Below are positions 3,018-53,072 of a stretch of DNA of 64,000 nucleotides, one piece after another. Numbering within the stretch: position 1 is the first letter of the stretch; the number at the start of each line of letters is the position of its first letter. The translations under genes and the position numbers were made by a program. Below the pieces are notes generated by a model. That model had not been told where the DNA came from, searched no databases, and worked only from the letters and a program-made list of their open reading frames with translations. The stretch spans positions 62,001 to 126,000 of the forward strand of contig MCFE01000006.1 of assembly GCA_002104905.1 (NCBI GenBank), written 5' to 3'. This DNA comes from Basidiobolus meristosporus CBS 931.73. Taxonomy: Eukaryota > Fungi > Basidiobolomycota.

Positions 3018-5941
3018 ATGAATTCTCCCGTACATTCATTAAGTAGATTTTTTCGGTCCACACGAAACTCAATTATCGGTCGCGATAAACAATATCCTAC
3101 AACTTCACCATCGCCACCACCGCCGCCTGAGAGTCCAACCACGACAGGGCCAAACGAATGGGTTGATTTTCAGCTACCAAACGACTCTGAGATGTATTAC
3201 ATTAATCCGGTAGATTGTTTTGCTAATATCAATGCTTTTAGGAGACTCAAGGGTTATCGACCTTCAACTCTGAATCTCCCTGAGTTTTTCAGTGGTTAAA
3301 AAATATTTGCATTCGCGGCTTCTGACTCTATTTTAATTCAAGGTGACCGGCGAATGCATCCGAAATTTACCCCCGAATGCAAACCTGTACGTAACGTGGT
3401 TGCATATGGACAATTCTAACAAGAACCCAAGACTAATCGACTCACTTAACAATTCTTAGAAATTCCAATGGGACGGACGGTCAATGGTGGGAACTCTACG
3501 ATCCTGAACACCAATTGAACTTTTATTTCAATTCGAGTACTGACCAAGCAGAATGGTTGAAGCCTGAAGATGTTGATATAATTCCTCTATCGTTAGTTCA
3601 GGTATCTCAACAAAGTTAAACCACTCTTGCATGATCAATCGTTAAATTATGAACAACGTCTCCAATAGAAAAACTCCTTAGGCCAAAAGGTCTTGATGAA
3701 AATTTCCATGAAAGCGGCTAGTAAGATTGCCGGGACAGATATCAAGGCACTAGGTATTGATCGTCAAGTTAATACATCGCATTCTCCCTTGGGGTTAAGT
3801 TTAGGCGGACCTGTGGGGGATACGGGAACATTGCGCAAGGAGCGTGCAGGTCGATTAAGCTCGCCCACTTTACCTAGTGTCCCACATGTATACAGATTTC
3901 AATATCGGTTGCAGTGGATATGGGCTAACGATCATCTTCATTTCATTTAGACAGCACCTATCCAATCATCACCATTAAGTCGGGCTGATGAGTGGTCAGA
4001 GCCTAGTACTGACCATTCAGACCATAGCCCAGAGCGCCTGGCACCCTCAAGCAACCTCACCCCTGTTCGAAAGTCCGTGTTAGTTGCAAATAATGCTCGT
4101 CGTTCTGGTATCAGCTCGCCGGTGCTGAATCCTGGTAAATGCCAACCAACAACTCGCCTAAAAAATTAATATCTAAGTACACCATATATAGATGCTGCTG
4201 CTGCCATGCATCCACATAATTCTCATCAAGAGACTGCTCCCATAGTTTTGCCTCAGCGGGTGCAGTCTTTACTCCCACCAAGTCGACATAATGGGTAATG
4301 TTTAATCTTTAGTTTTGTACCTAAGCGGGTTGCTGACAGTCTGGCTGATTGATAGCCATGCCTCACTTCCGTCTCAGTTGGTTGTAGAGATTGAACAATT
4401 TCAGATCGATGGCTTCGCCAAGAAGTATTTTGCCACACACAAACGAGGAATATTTCGACGCAAAGTGCCAATGGAAAAGATGCTTCAATGGACTAAAGTA
4501 TGTTGGTCTATGGTATGATTTATAATCACCTTTATCTAACCCTTTACTAGGATTCCATCAAGCAACCACTGATGGTTCTCAATAAAAATGTGCATAGAGA
4601 TGCCTTGAAGTGTTTTAAACATATCCTTCTGTTCGATAATTAGACATAATCCCTATCCCCGATTCTATCCTTAACTTTTGATTCTACTGATCCAACGGGT
4701 TATGGGTGATAGGGTTCGCACCAAAAACAACGAATTGCGGGACATCCAGTGGCTTTTAGATCGTGGAATCGTTTTTGGTGAACTTCGCGACGAGATTTAC
4801 GTTCAAATGTGCAAGCAGCTGACCAACAATCCACACCCGTAAGTTATTGACAAAGCCAGCCTGCGTTGATTTCGACTAATGATGTGTTCTACCCCAGATC
4901 TAGCGTATTTAAGGGATGGCAGTTGATGAGTATTGTCACGGTAGTGTTTCCTGCATCCAAAAATTTTGAAGAGTATTTGAAAACCTTTTACCGCGCACAC
5001 TTCCAATCCTCCGAGCCAAAGATACCCTTAATGGCCAAGCATTGCTACAATAAGCTAATGCGTATATCGAAATCTGGTCCTCGTGGAAAAATTCCTTCAT
5101 CAACTGAAATTGAGCAGGCAAAGGTAACCTATTTGCAATACTTGATGAATGGCACCCGAAATTGGGCTGATCTTGATTTCTTTAAGGATGCCGCGTTCTA
5201 TCCTTCAGTATTTGGCGACACACTAGAGAACTTTATGGAGCAACAGAAGGAACAGCATCCAGAGCTTCCTCTTCCTCATATCCTTCTCTTTTTAGCTGGT
5301 GCCGTTCTCAAGCTTGGTGGATTGCATAGCGAAGGAATTTTCAGGCTCTCAGGAGACCCCGAGTTCGTGAATCAACTGCGTTTGAATTTAGAAAAACAGA
5401 AGTACGATCTTGAAGGGATCGCTGATCCAAACTCTCCCTCATCCTTACTAAAGCTGTGGCTGCGAGATCTTTCTGAACCCCTTATACCCATCGAGTTTTA
5501 TGATAAGTGCCTCCTTTTTGCAGAAAATCCTCAAGAGGCCATTCAGCTTATTGGCAACCTACCCGATATCAATCGCCAAGTAGTCCATTTCATGATCTCA
5601 TATTTGCAGGTAACTCTCAAAACTAGGGTAACGTTAGATTATCTCTAACTTTTGCACTGAAAATCTAGATGTTCTTAACAGACGAAGCCACTAGCTCCAC
5701 CAAGATGAGTGTTTCGAACATTGCCATGATCTTTGCGCCGAACTTTCTGAGATGTCCAAGCGAGAATTTGAATGAGATTTTCGAAAAGACCCGTTACGAA
5801 CAAGCTTACATTCGAACCTTGCTGCTTGAAATGAGGCCGAAGCCATTAGTCACATTGAACCCTGAAAGTGGAGAGATAATAATGACCAACACCTCAAGCC
5901 CAAAGCTAGTGGAGGCTATTGAATCAACCCAAATCGATTAA
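3018..5941 (+). CDS. WW-WW-MyTH4-RhoGAP protein (ARHGAP39-like), multi-exon
   Basis: WW-like exons NEWVDFQ..MYYINP|VTGEC and GQWWELYDPEHQLNFYFNSSTDQAEWLKP; MyTH4-like KMLQWTK|DSIKQPL and ELRDEIYVQMCKQLTNNP; RhoGAP GGLHSEGIFRLSGD, SLLKLWLRDLSEPLIP, KMSVSNIAMIFAPNFLRCP; GT-AG introns restore the frame. Confidence 0.9.
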
Positions 5942-46061: not shown

Positions 46062-47878
46062 CAAGGTGAACTGTTTCCCTATTTAATACGTTCAATTCAC
46101 TTATCATAATATGCCCGATGTGGTTTGAAAGGGAGAGGGGAAATTAATCTATTCCGAATCAACATCAGAAGACGAATGCACACATTAGCCGAGGAAAAGC
46201 ATACCAAACGTCGGTTGCGAATGATTCTAATCTCGTGATAACAGCGGTCACACCAAAGCCGTCTAACGCGATTAGATGACTGTGAAGTCAAGAGAGAATA
46301 ATTATGAACCTATCGTTATTGCAAGTGTTGCGAATGTTCATGATAGCTCGCCCTACCAAATTACGTGTAACCAACTGTAAATGGAAAGAATCTCGATTTC
46401 TATTATTAAATCCTATCTATATATAACAAATTCATCAGCACCACTTGTGAACAGTATTCTAGCTATATAGGTGCTATCATCGGGCTACTGGATAATGGCA
46501 AAACTACTTACGAATCTTCAAAGTCGAGAATTTCTTGGCATTTTTCCGGCCGTGCATCGCCGGTTCGGCCTGTATTGTGATGCCTTGATGCCAACAAATG
46601 GAGCGTGGAAACGAAGCTACACAGATTTGAAAGAGCTGTGGGAGAAGTATTGGGCAGCTATGGTTACTCATATCGGTCTGCCATACAGCCTGTACATTCT
46701 GTGTTTGAAGACCACAGCCAGTATTCTATAGTGATATGACTGTAGACGCAGCATACAAGTAATCATCCAAACCTTTGCAGATATGGCTGTTGTGATTCAT
46801 TGAGAAGCTATAGTTCAGAATAGCGCCATCGGAAATCGATATCTGAACATTGTTGGTCATTAATGTTTAGTCCGAACACCGAGCAAGAGTGATCACTGCC
46901 TTATGTCTATCAGGTCAAGGTGATTGTTTTTATGCCCCCGAAAGTTGATGCGCATGCACTAGCCTCCCCTCATGTACCTCATGTAGACTGGCCTTTCATT
47001 ATTCCAGAAGTTGCCCTACAAAGTGGTCAACAAGTCCGAAGCAGACACTCGAGTCCATGGTGATACTGAGCACGCGTGGGTGTCTTGGCCAAGGCATCTT
47101 TTGTAGGTAGGGTTGATAACACTCAGATATCCAACAAATTGCCATATTGATCGATAATGGGAATCTATTGGCTGTCCGGCTAATCCGTTATCAAAACCAC
47201 TTGCGGAAACGTATGACTCTTGATTCTGTAGGAATTATCAAATACGAATCAGACCCTTATTGTACCGTAAAAAAATATACCTGCTTGGGGTAAAACGTGG
47301 AATAATGGTAGCTGCCGGGTCATGATATGTGGCATGAAGGGTCAGCAAAATTCCCCGAAATGGCGGAAGCACATGATGCTGAAATGAAAAACTGGATAAT
47401 CATTGTTCTTGGCATCATCAATCTTGGTGATATCTTGCGAAGGGCTACCAATGAGTTTGTTGTATCCGTACACATTCACAATGGTGTCTAGTGATAGTGT
47501 GGTTTACTTTTGTTTTCGTGAATTTATTAGTAAGGATCTACAAAATTAGTGTGCATCAATGCGATCCTAAAAACGTACTGATTAGATTGGCCGTACTCAT
47601 TCCTCATGCTTAAATAAAAATCATATGCAGAGGTTATTGTCAATCTGTGGCTAGGCGTTTCAGTGGGTTATGTATAGAGTGAGTTGAAGGGGAGGTGGGA
47701 AAAGGAATATCTACAGCATGATGATGCGCACATGGGCAGAGCGCAAAGGGGTTTCCTTGCAGCATGTCCTATTCTTTGGCTACTTGAACCAGTGGAGTGT
47801 ACTTTTCGTTACGTACAATTTCATAATATCGATAGAATATCGACATAAAATAGACATCTAGAATCATCTATTGAGATT

Positions 47879-48468
47879 TTAGTTCCCAAGTTCAGTGGTG
47901 ATAAGCACAATAAAGCAGTGATTTACCGTAGTAACTGTCATCCATATTAACGCGCCATGATGGGTGATGACTGAGAGAACCAACAGCCCAATTGTGCCAA
48001 GGATTTCCAAGGCCATCGATGCAAGTAGGTTGCCTATCAATAGGTAACTAGATCTGAAGAGTCCTAGGATGCCAATAATCGAGTAAAAGATCCTTAATAC
48101 AGTAATACACATGGGTAGCCATAGGCTTTGAGCCACGGCAAGCCGAACTTTGTTGGCTTTGGGGTCCAGAATTTCCAAGTGACGGACTAACAGGCATATG
48201 GTGATAATACTAGAAATCTATTCGCCGATTAGTTTATACAATTAGCGTTAGATTTTCACAAGAAACTTACCAATTCAATTCCCAGTACAGTATATCCAAC
48301 GTCTAGGTAAAAGGAATCATCCCTCATAGGCTCATAGTCACATTCAGCAGAGAACTCCTGCGGAAGCACGTTTGAGTCAGAGCCAGAGTAGAGAACTTTA
48401 CCTGGCAAAGGTTGCTCCGAGTCTACAGAGATTTGTGTGTAGGACATAGTGAGGGTGAAAGCTTCCAT
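47879..48468 (-). CDS. Hypothetical membrane protein with about four TM segments; 2 exons
   Basis: MSYTQISVDSEQ..VGYTVLGIEL|ISSIITICLLVRH joined in frame by a GTAAGT..TAG intron; further hydrophobic stretches follow. Confidence 0.6.
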
Positions 48469-49046: not shown

Positions 49047-51025
49047 TCAAATACGACTGGCGGCACATGTGTTGGGTGGTTGTCCGAATTGACGGGTTTC
49101 TACACCTTTGGGATCCTGAAGATACGACAGCGTAGGGGGATTAGCAATAGGGAGAATATCGTTTGCACCAATTCCGCATATCGTTGATGTCTGGTTTCTA
49201 TCCGCCACACCACAGAACATGAAGGGGATGTTCGGGTCTGAGTAAGTCCCTATGAGACGTGGGTAATATGCCACGAAGTGCATACACATCTCATTATAGG
49301 AAGCAATTCCGAACTCCACTTCAGTTGCATTCGGTGCCAAGCTGGGGAATTTGTTTACAGATGTGTCATATCTAAAAGGGATGTCCGTTAACGTTTTACA
49401 TTGCGGTTAACAGAAACTTCGACTTGACACTTACACACAATGTGTGTTGATGCGATCACCCGGTCGGATCCAGAAGTCGTTGATTTTGTGGATTTTTTGG
49501 AAATCGAACTCCCAGAACTCTGAAAGATCCATTACCACACTCTGATTACCTCCCACATTACCAATAACTCGGGGGTTGACTCCTTTATCCGAAGTATTAC
49601 TACTAGTTACTGTACTCCATATTTGAGTTCCGTAGCTGTGCATGTGAGGCATGGAGGCGAAAACTCGCGCTTCGTGCGGCCAGATGTTTGTACACTCACC
49701 AGGACAAGTATACTGGAACTCGGTCGGCTCAGTCTTACCTATCGCCATAGGAGGGGATACTACTAATGGATCACCTAATACAACCCACCCTGCATCATAT
49801 TGGCGCTTTTTAGAGGTATAATGAATCGACACACCAGTTTCGTCAGTCATGTTTGGGTCGGCTCCTGTTGGATTGTTATAGTGTGTTTGAATTACAACAT
49901 ATTTTGTAGTGTATGGGTCGCTGCTATCACCAAAAGGCAACCCTGCTTCAGCTGGATAGTTCAGAACTCCAGTTCCCACTGCCCATCTAGAGTCTGAGTT
50001 AGACACAAGCCTCAAAAGTCAGATATACCTCACATTCTTACCCATAAACGAAGCCATAACAGCCACTCATTCCTTCCGTATGATCATTGGAGTTGCTTGA
50101 GGCGCAAACCGTAGGGTTATTCAATACTTTCTGAAAGAAATTGTCATTCGAACATATGTAGACCAACATATGATGGACGTATTTTGACCCAATAATTGGT
50201 GCAACAGAGATAATGTGGCCAGAAGTATCTGTAGAGTTTGCTAACGGATCAAATATGAACCCAGTACAAGAATAAAGTGTAGGTTCCGCTGAGAGTTTGA
50301 AGGGTGGTGCTGTATAATTGAACACTTGCACCTCTGGGGTAGAATCTACAGGGCTTGAATCCTCGTCTCCAAAAAAGACAACCTCGGTGTACCCACGGTT
50401 ATCTCCATGGTAGGAAATATCCGTCATACCGTTTTCTCCATATGCATAAACGATTGAGACAGAGCCATTGGTAACTACTCTGTCTTGTGAATCGCTTGTA
50501 TTTAACGGGCGCGTAAATTCCACTAGAGTTTGTCCATCTGCTGTTTGGAACCCAAAATTTGGTACATAGTTCTGACAGTCATCAGGTGGTGGCAATGCCT
50601 TTTTCGTAGCATAACGGTCTGTCATGATCGTAGTGAAGTAAGTGTCATTCTTTGTGACAGATGCAGTCACAACATCCGATCCTGGCATTCCCCCTGTTTC
50701 TGGTTCAGAAAAACCAAACCCAATCCTAGGAATAGTCAAGGTTATTGATTTATTTCAGAAAGACAGCCTGTCAAACCAGAGCCTACCATCCAGTAGTGTT
50801 GACTTGCAGAAGTATGGTAATGGAAGCAGGTTGATTTTGCTGATCAACATGCCAATGGATTGTGTACTTGTCAGGTATTACCGATACTGACTTGGTGTAT
50901 TTGGTCCACTCCACATTGGCAGCAGAAGTGGAGGTGTAGGCAATCAGCGGATCACCTGCAAAACAATATGGGAGGATGGCAAGAGCAAAATAAATGCTTC
51001 TGGTCATGAAGTAGTGGAATGACAT
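49047..51025 (-). CDS. Secreted DOMON + copper type II ascorbate-dependent monooxygenase (DBH/MOXD1-like); 4 exons
   Basis: Signal peptide; DOMON YTIHWHV..TTGW|IGFGFSE..GGMPGSDVVTA..DRYA..VEFTRPLNT.D.QD; YVHHMLVY; YG|WAVG; IQTHYNNP; MPHMHSYG; NEMCMHF..YYP. Confidence 0.93.
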
Positions 51026-53072
51026 GGTTCCCAAGCCTGGTGGTAGAGAATAGAGCCTGAATTTATTGAGTGTGTAATTAAGAGACATGCCTCTTATATG
51101 CTGTGAAAAGAAGTCTTGGCAATGGAAAAGAGAAGCCTCGCATATTATTGGAGAGCTCGAATCCGTTCAGCAGCTGCTGATCATCATAAGCTCGAACAGT
51201 AAACTAGGTGTATTTCTGATATTGGCAGCGCAAATAACTCGAAACCTTCTTGGCAGCTGGGCTAGGTAAATTGAAACAGATCGAACGAAAGTGAGTAGAC
51301 TAGAGTACGCTTTTACCAATTAAACTGGAACATTATTAGGATTTCCGTAGCCATTCGGTAGCTAATGGGCAGGTTGATCCCCACGAAACATGAACTGACA
51401 ATGCAGTGCTCAAGAGTCAGATTAGAGATGGGATCTTTAAATGAAATACTCTAATACTTGATTCAATAGCGCCCACCCATTTTTTTGTGCACACGGTCAT
51501 TGATTGCCATTCCGAGGATGCCAGGGATCTCAGCTATAGGAATGAATGTAACATTTTACAGTGTACATGCCATAGGTCCAGCTAATCACTACAAAGAAGG
51601 ATTAGAGTTGTCGAGAAAGCACTCTGGGGTCGAGGGTTTCTCCAGTAAATTTCTGCTCTGATGTTGGTCAGTTGTTATTAGCGGATGTGCGGAGGTTATC
51701 CCGCTACCAGAGTGGATTGGGCGTGCTTTTGAGACATGATCAGCTCATGATCATGAATAGAAGGTTCGACGATTCATACATATATATCCCTACTATAAGA
51801 AAGCATGCAGACGACACGTTATGCCCACTGGAGTTGATGGTACTTATTGGATCAAGATATAATTCTTGAACAAGGTCTAGTAGATCTACTTCGCCATCAG
51901 TGTAGCCACACGCTAATGTACTGCATTATTGGAAAATGTTGTGCGGGCTGAAATGTAAGAAATGTCTGACGCATAGGTTAGCGGCCGTAGTTTTCGAATA
52001 ACTTCAAGCAGGTCCATGATTGGTTGTGGTACGTTCATAGCTATCCCACCGACAGTCCCAACGTGGTGGCTTTGCAAATTCGGACTTTCGGACAGCCGTA
52101 GGGACGCTATTCGACATAACGTTAACAGCGGTACTGGCCTGGCAAAATCGGTATGACTGGGTCACCAATCAAAGTTATCATTAGCATGTAAATCCCCCAG
52201 TACTATTCTAGCGTAAGGATCATAGGGTATCGGAAGCTCGAATTCTGCCAAACATACATCTTGAAGCCACCTGGTATATACGTCTGGTTTGGAAAATAAG
52301 TTCTGTGGATTGCGATTCAAATGGAATACAGGAATATGTGCTGTCAAGTGAATGTGAATACTCCTAATGAAATATCATGTAATTCCAATAGTCTTTTCAA
52401 CATTCTTATTCCTATCCCCATCCTTAGTATGAGATCTTGGCAGGAAGGTATCTTTCTTGTGGGTGGGAGAGCTGAGCATCCGTTTCATGTAGCCGAAATT
52501 CGAAGATTATCAGCTTAATTTCGAAGCATATTTTAGTATTTCGTCAAACCTGGGCTAGTATCAGTAAAATTAACAAGACTGCCTTTTCCCAAATCTTCAA
52601 CGAAGGTACTTCATGTTAAATGGGAAAACAAAGCAGCTATGACCAAAGCTTTTTTATTAAGCCACACATCACGAACTCGAATCCATAAATACTTCTGAAT
52701 CATATGCTTTGATGTTCAATTGATGTCATACTTTATTATATTGGGCCTGTGCCTTTAAGCCGTTGAGTTGTACCGGGAATCTCATCCTTCTTGTCTGCAT
52801 TCCATGATAATGCGCCTGTGGGTCATCGTAAACCATCGAGGGTCTGCAATAAATATGGCCAAGGTACAAAGAGAAGTTCATTTTATAAATCCGCCTGTTT
52901 TATCAATCCAGCATGCTCAATACTCTTGTGCTGCAAAAGTAATTGACTTTCCTTCTTAACCACTATAATTGACATCAACACTCCAGCAAATACTCCTTAC
53001 ATACCATTAATCGATGTTGAATCATCGATGTCATTGAAGGATCCTGCCCATCAGGCCGCTTCATCTTTCTGT

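Follow-up and report, generated by a model that had tools for sequence, protein, structure and literature searches.

Dopamine beta-hydroxylase (DBH) carries a two-helix dimerisation module that holds an intermolecular Cys pair, has six intramolecular disulfides (the 14 bridged Cys of the bovine enzyme account for these six and for two intermolecular bonds) and possesses a DOMON domain without haem axial ligands (PMC4846438). On the basis of its homology with PHM, Glu268, Glu369 and Tyr494 of rat DBH have been proposed to form hydrogen bonds with the substrate (PMC3197665). The related MOXD1 is an orphan enzyme, and its substrate is predicted to be hydrophobic (PMC5366752 and PMC11918410, which both cite Xin et al. 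2004). Here we describe a fungal relative of these proteins, encoded on the minus strand of a 64,000-nucleotide stretch of Basidiobolus meristosporus CBS 931.73 (contig MCFE01000006.1, positions 62,001 to 126,000; hereafter the window). With a probability that we put at roughly 0.7, the gene encodes a soluble, N-glycosylated, disulfide-rich and probably exported two-copper monooxygenase of the DBH/TBH/MOXD/PHM family, MOXD1-like in type, and represents an ancestral gene kept in a small fungal clade.

The coding region (window 51025..49047) comprises four exons, three introns and 599 codons, with a TGA stop codon at 49049..49047. Coordinates are collected in Table 1. The reading frame is open through all four exons, and the introns all lie in phase 2, so that each interrupted codon is split past its second base. 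When exon 3 was the query of an exhaustive search, a protein of 587 residues matched it at 100% identity throughout the exon. The gene is K493DRAFT_295365 (hypothetical protein; 100% match) of the same strain and contig, named 'DOMON domain-containing protein' in UniRef. It is already public and automatically annotated by domain, and is not a new discovery as such. Full-length comparisons were made with the deposited proteins, K493DRAFT_295365 and its Basidiobolus ranarum orthologue, and our own exons were searched one by one.

The exon-by-exon Pfam scan identified DOMON (2.2e-14) and Cu2_monooxygen N (4.1e-10) in exon 2, Cu2_monooxygen N (1.1e-8) and Cu2_monoox_C (1.7e-6) in exon 3, and Cu2_monoox_C (1e-3) in exon 4. 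Because the profile coordinates run on over each intron (3-86 then 91-128; 2-107 then 116-144), the splice model is independently supported. In the full-length proteins PF01082 reached 91.6 bits (gathering cut-off 30) and PF03712 33.9-56.1 bits (gathering cut-off 23), with DOMON at 2.1e-21. No NCBIfam model matched the protein, and a search of exon 3 against a protein-cluster atlas returned generic PHM/Cu2_monoox clusters only. The codons of all six copper ligands, three for the electron-transfer site (CuH) and three for the oxygen-activating site (CuM), were read directly. Across a 62-sequence family alignment, 60-61 rows have His or Met at each of the six. By residue count the ligands line up with His262, His263, His333 and Met487 of DBH, the His-x-His column being of low alignment confidence. 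An earlier note on this DNA had proposed a DOMON with both Cu type II domains, a full set of CuH and CuM ligands and three ordinary introns, and the analysis bears this out, with the ligands at the coordinates that the note gave and the introns being GT..AG introns of 61, 55 and 63 nucleotides. The protein is a member of the copper type II ascorbate-dependent monooxygenases, and the N-terminal DOMON fused to the catalytic core places it in the DBH-like subfamily.

In a sequence search of solved structures human DBH (4ZEL) was the sole match (E 8.6e-32). An AlphaFold2 model of the intact B. ranarum orthologue, calculated from the 62-sequence alignment, had a predicted local distance difference test score (pLDDT) of 89.6 and a predicted template-modelling score (pTM) of 0.87. 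Foldseek with this model returned DBH as the best hit, over 530 columns (E 5.5e-34), followed by PHM cores (about 1e-14). In ESM-Atlas the best match was a chordate 'MOXD1' cluster (template-modelling score 0.67), the next an arthropod DOMON cluster. Human DBH and insect TBH have the same copper ligands as the fungal protein, and likewise the Asp cluster of the DOMON, a putative metal site (PMC4846438). The differences from human DBH are nevertheless considerable. Identity is 24%, the Glu/Glu/Tyr triad is lacking, the region of the intermolecular Cys pair is absent, and there are 12 Cys as against the 14 bridged ones of bovine DBH. Past residue 408, over the C-terminal 190 residues, the model contains no helix of four residues or more. 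Since the two-helix dimerisation module of DBH is missing from the model, the fungal protein is likely to be a monomer.

The likeness to MOXD1 and MOXD2 extends over the whole protein, comprising DOMON, CuH, CuM and a Cys-containing tail, the full ligand set, a Met and a Tyr-His motif in the DOMON, and hydrophobic residues at the positions of the DBH triad. Identity to these proteins is about 28-30%, and the fungal protein falls in a separate, well-supported clade. It has no C-terminal hydrophobic segment, and the endoplasmic reticulum or membrane retention reported for MOXD1 is not expected. As judged from sequence, the architecture and the hydrophobic pocket positions make the enzyme appear most like the orphan MOXD1-type enzymes.

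In 4ZEL the rat triad corresponds to the Glu that follows HHM, the Glu within IMELG and the Tyr lying four residues past the Met ligand, the offset in numbering being exactly three. Alignment with 4ZEL and the 62-sequence alignment show Leu, Val and Phe at these positions in the fungal protein. In PHM, the residues that we take to bind the carboxylate of the peptidyl-Gly substrate are Arg240, Asn316 and Tyr318, and in the family alignment the fungal protein has Met, Met and Phe there. MOXD proteins (fish, crinoid, chiton) and protist homologues show the same hydrophobic pattern as the fungal protein. On a homology model, this weakly suggests that the fungal enzyme resembles MOXD rather than DBH/TBH or PHM. 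Because the architecture is MOXD1-like and the pocket hydrophobic, unlike that of DBH/TBH or PHM, the substrate is probably not an amine but a rather hydrophobic molecule.

The earlier note had thought of host or prey monoamines as substrates. The protein would then be a true amine beta-hydroxylase of the DBH/TBH type, secreted to modify dopamine or tyramine in the animal gut. Basidiobolus lives in the guts of amphibians (frogs) and reptiles, the missing membrane anchor would permit release, and the domain order is that of DBH, the only solved structure matched by sequence. The pocket does not agree with such a substrate, Leu, Val and Phe taking the place of the triad modelled to bind the amine and phenol groups. 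Moreover, the nearest relatives occur in the Endogonales, which are plant-associated (plant-root) fungi, and in free-living protists rather than in animal-associated organisms, and the protein and the sampled animal sequences fall in different parts of the tree. We consider an amine hydroxylase quite unlikely. A search of the literature on fungal DBH-like enzymes gave no relevant paper, and a paper on monoamine evolution does not mention fungi.

A peptide alpha-hydroxylase of the PHM type, acting on Gly-extended secreted peptides, is less likely still. The catalytic core has the two-domain copper fold and the ligands of PHM, the catalytic core of PAM, as the Foldseek hits illustrate. However, identity is 15-18%, PHM was not matched by sequence at E<=1e-3 among solved structures, and the peptide-carboxylate residues are not conserved. 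PHM itself has no DOMON, and neither the fungal protein nor the adjoining genes encode a PAL/NHL lyase domain such as the partner domain in PAM.

On the pattern of the family, catalysis would begin with the transfer of single electrons from a small reductant to the three-His CuH site. The reductant is ascorbate in animals; in the fungus it might be D-erythroascorbate or another donor. Fungi are not generally known to make ascorbate. Electrons would then move from CuH to the His-His-Met CuM site, where O2 would be activated. One of its oxygen atoms would enter a C-H bond of the substrate and the second would leave as water.

A further route of electron entry is suggested by the DOMON. A Met and a Tyr-His motif in this domain are present in 56 of the 62 family members, MOXD included. 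In human DBH the Met is replaced by Leu, and the Tyr-His is missing. The Met and the His are 93 residues apart and lie in loops flanking the face where the DOMON domains of cellobiose dehydrogenase (CDH) and of plant CYBDOM proteins bind haem. Haem-binding DOMON domains use a Met/His pair, for instance Met90 and His174 of HYP1, and His176 in 4QI3 (PMC10784544). With the DOMON part of the orthologue model, Foldseek found the fungal cytochrome domains 6jt6 and 4qi3 (E 2e-5 to 2e-4). In 4QI3, His176 is presumably paired with Met74. The resemblance to haem-binding DOMONs (CDH cytochrome domain, plant AIR12, CYBDOM) concerns the beta-sandwich fold and a Met/His spacing of about 93; as a difference, no haem has been reported for any DBH-family enzyme. 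A DOMON-only profile search of the Protein Data Bank found DBH only and reached no haem-binding DOMON structure. By analogy, the DOMON of the MOXD/protist/fungal branch, as opposed to that of vertebrate DBH, may tentatively be regarded as a candidate b-type cytochrome, a possibility that we rate as rather unlikely. If true, the DOMON would be the enzyme's own electron-entry module feeding CuH, much as the CDH cytochrome domain feeds the copper of lytic polysaccharide monooxygenases, and the enzyme could be driven by cell-surface electron-transfer proteins instead of ascorbate.

The deposited protein can be mapped exactly onto the DNA only with an additional, fourth intron of 36 nucleotides. 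Its removal swaps a 13-residue segment for a single Trp, with loss of a conserved Cys and of the YYPR motif directly after the Met ligand. The segment is kept in every homologue of the alignment. The B. ranarum orthologue, 72% identical, has the first three introns only, at the same positions and in the same phases, and reads through the stretch. Within these 36 nucleotides the two species differ at eight bases, five of the differences being synonymous third-position changes, and B. ranarum has GC in place of the donor GT. The structural model shows the segment as a core beta strand (residues 522-529) directly past the Met ligand. The Cu2_monoox_C match of the deposited B. meristosporus model scores 33.9 bits and ends at profile position 114, whereas that of the intact B. 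ranarum orthologue scores 56.1 bits and reaches position 144. On these grounds the 36-nucleotide stretch is most likely coding, and the three-intron model is better than the deposited one. The latter should be corrected, as it removes a core strand beside the CuM methionine.

The strand missing from the deposited model could be taken to indicate a decaying or non-catalytic relic, either a pseudo-enzyme or an unexpressed gene. This is very improbable. The missing strand stems from the deposited splice model and not from the DNA, the frame is open in all exons, and the six ligands and 12 Cys are kept. Over the four exons together, the proportion of nonsynonymous differences from B. ranarum (pN) is 0.146 and that of synonymous differences (pS) 0.785, which is saturated. 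A pN so far below pS points to strong and long-lasting purifying selection. The gene is real, intact and conserved.

The N-terminus runs from a basic residue through a hydrophobic stretch to a small-residue site, C-F-A|G, as in signal peptides. In the model of the orthologue, residues 8-22 form a low-confidence helix, as a signal peptide would give. An in-frame ATG lies 63 nucleotides upstream of the start, at 51088-51086 on the minus strand, and is a possible alternative start that would add 21 residues before the signal peptide. The start at 51025 appears likelier than the one at 51088 because the B. ranarum orthologue begins directly with the signal-like segment. The mature protein contains 12 Cys and 11 N-glycosylation sequons, a content as expected of a secretory-pathway glycoprotein. 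The C-terminal tail stops a few residues past the last conserved Cys. A C-terminal hydrophobic tail is absent from the Basidiobolus proteins and present in 30 of the 62 relatives, including Jimgerdemannia paralogues, whose tails resemble glycosylphosphatidylinositol or transmembrane signals. Since it has no such tail, the Basidiobolus protein is expected to be soluble. In the fungal sequences and in most of the non-animal ones (alignment A1), one DOMON Cys, presumably bonded to a C-terminal Cys, belongs to a D-x-C-Q motif. Animal DBH and MOXD carry the same presumed Cys in a T-C-D motif, which marks the two groups apart.

The exhaustive search with exon 3 gave 1375 cluster representatives at E<=1e-3, six of them at E<=1e-30, and the best 150 of the 1375 were examined. 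A word-index search is insensitive; its alignment-based version gave essentially the same 22 proteins as the single-sequence version. Among the matches listed, the named fungal relatives were from B. ranarum, Jimgerdemannia flammicorona (at least six deposited proteins, some partial) and Endogone sp.; no Dikarya homologue appeared in the source-naming searches, the Endogonales being the only other fungi. From these searches the gene appears to be rare among fungi. Named relatives outside the fungi were from Thecamonas, Ploeotia, Clastostelium and Leptophrys, together with animal MOXD proteins. Two metatranscriptome relatives, P0004 and P0006, lie on short JGI contigs.

A maximum-likelihood tree was calculated from 50 sequences, the labelled animal sequences being those of MOXD (LG+G4; support as ultrafast bootstrap, UFBoot, and Shimodaira-Hasegawa-like approximate likelihood ratio test, SH-aLRT). 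Eight fungal sequences are grouped with one sequence from a soil metatranscriptome in a clade of 100/100 support, in which Basidiobolus is sister to the Endogonales group. The clade lies among protist sequences. The animal MOXD proteins are found across a 97/97 branch, and the fungal protein is not inside their clade. Support for the deep nodes is 7-47, and the fungal clade has no fixed sister. Intron 1, in phase 2 within the Trp codon of the G-W-[VI]-G-F-G motif, is common to Basidiobolus and one Jimgerdemannia paralogue. The gene is widespread in heterotrophic protists and, to judge from these sequences, most likely an ancient eukaryotic one that a few early-diverging fungi have kept and most others, including the Dikarya, have lost.

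The alternative is a horizontal acquisition, from a protist or between Endogonales and Basidiobolus, instead of inheritance from a fungal ancestor. It would suit the very patchy fungal distribution and the weakly supported deep branches, and Basidiobolus is said to carry many transferred genes. It has to contend with the spliceosomal introns, one of which is common to Basidiobolus and Jimgerdemannia in position and phase, and with the long distance, some 1.35 changes per site, that separates Basidiobolus from the Endogonales in the tree. The composition is native, with a G+C content that stays even from the gene into the flanks, and two Basidiobolus species share the gene order. Any transfer would be ancient and eukaryotic in source, and we regard it as unlikely, if less so than the amine-hydroxylase proposal. 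The composition, the gene order and the common position of intron 1 also uphold a further statement of the earlier note, that the gene is neither a contaminant nor a recent bacterial transfer. Its remark that it did not know the family from model Dikarya agrees with the source-naming searches, in which no Dikarya homologue appeared.

Several points weigh against the reading as a whole, that is, an exported, MOXD1-like enzyme encoded by an ancestral fungal gene. The signal peptide, also put forward in the earlier note, is predicted by eye and from the model. The pocket argument goes back to a homology model of DBH (Prigge et al., as cited in PMC3197665) and not to a substrate-bound DBH structure, and according to the same source some insect sequences also lack the Glu/Glu/Tyr triad. 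The absence from other fungi is that seen in searches of limited reach, with an insensitive word index and the best 150 of 1375 representatives. Finally, the backbone of the tree is compatible both with an ancestral gene that suffered many losses and with an old transfer from another eukaryote into fungi.

Some of the relatives show peculiarities of their own. Several paralogue models of J. flammicorona (P0152, P0003, P0174) are without the His-His, His-x-His or R-I-N-T-H-C segments. These gaps look like splice-model errors in a multi-intron family (seven introns were mapped in P0174), and there could be degenerate copies among them. A number of relatives with lengths of 1000-1580 residues (P0009, P0029, P0041, P0058 and others) match the query in two separate stretches and may be tandem-duplicated or fused copper monooxygenases.

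No paralogue of the monooxygenase was found within the 64-kb window. The neighbouring genes encode, according to Pfam, a Pin1-type rotamase, a DnaJ/CSL zinc-ribbon protein, WD40 and Brix proteins, a protein with a weak LysM match, and proteins without a Pfam match. The rotamase, DnaJ/CSL, WD40 and Brix genes are of housekeeping type, and no functional gene cluster was recognised around the monooxygenase. Directly downstream on the same strand lies a small gene (47769-48447) for a very hydrophobic protein of 188 residues, probably a multi-pass membrane protein, with no Pfam match. Its B. ranarum counterpart (177 residues, 4191-4844 of its locus) has kept the position, the order common to both species being monooxygenase, small membrane protein and LysM protein.

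Table 1. Features of the Basidiobolus meristosporus monooxygenase gene, in window coordinates.
Feature	Position	Strand	Remarks
Whole coding region, DBH/MOXD-like copper monooxygenase	49047..51025	minus	4 exons, 3 introns, 599 codons
Exon 1	51025..50787	minus	starts at ATG; signal-like N-terminus and first DOMON strands
Intron 1	50786..50726	minus	61 nt, GT..AG, phase 2, interrupts DOMON
Exon 2	50725..50042	minus	remainder of DOMON and most of CuH domain
Intron 2	50041..49987	minus	55 nt, GT..AG, phase 2, interrupts CuH domain
Exon 3	49986..49435	minus	end of CuH domain and most of CuM domain
Intron 3	49434..49372	minus	63 nt, GT..AG, phase 2, interrupts CuM domain
Exon 4	49371..49047	minus	end of CuM domain and Cys-containing tail
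Stretch spliced out by deposited model as fourth intron	49250..49285	minus	36 nt, GTATGC..TCATAG, phase 1
Predicted signal peptide, about residues 1-23	50957..51025	minus	cleavage after C-F-A (C-F-A|G)
DOMON domain, about residues 26-205	50350..50950	minus	Pfam; carries conserved Asp cluster
DOMON Met (G-G-M-P-G-S-D)	50688..50686	minus	near-invariant in family
DOMON Tyr-His, His	50409..50407	minus	near-invariant in family
CuH (electron-transfer) domain, Pfam Cu2_monooxygen N	49863..50316	minus	His-His and His ligands
CuH ligands His-His	50175..50170	minus	codons read directly
CuH ligand His of THYNN	49883..49881	minus	codon read directly
CuM (oxygen-activating) domain, Pfam Cu2_monoox_C	49212..49796	minus	His-x-His and Met ligands
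CuM ligands His-Met-His	49646..49638	minus	codons read directly
CuM ligand Met of EMC	49289..49287	minus	codon read directly
C-terminal tail, Cys-containing	49050..49211	minus	no helical dimerisation module, no hydrophobic anchor

The gene would join the ancestral eukaryotic genes that Basidiobolus and the Endogonales have retained; in the searches made here it did not come up in other named fungi. The MOXD-type copper monooxygenases have gone two decades without a known substrate. Expression and substrate screening would be convenient with a soluble, single-copy fungal member that comes from a culturable organism and has a close orthologue at hand, and such a protein would also allow testing whether the DOMON of the MOXD/protist/fungal branch binds haem.

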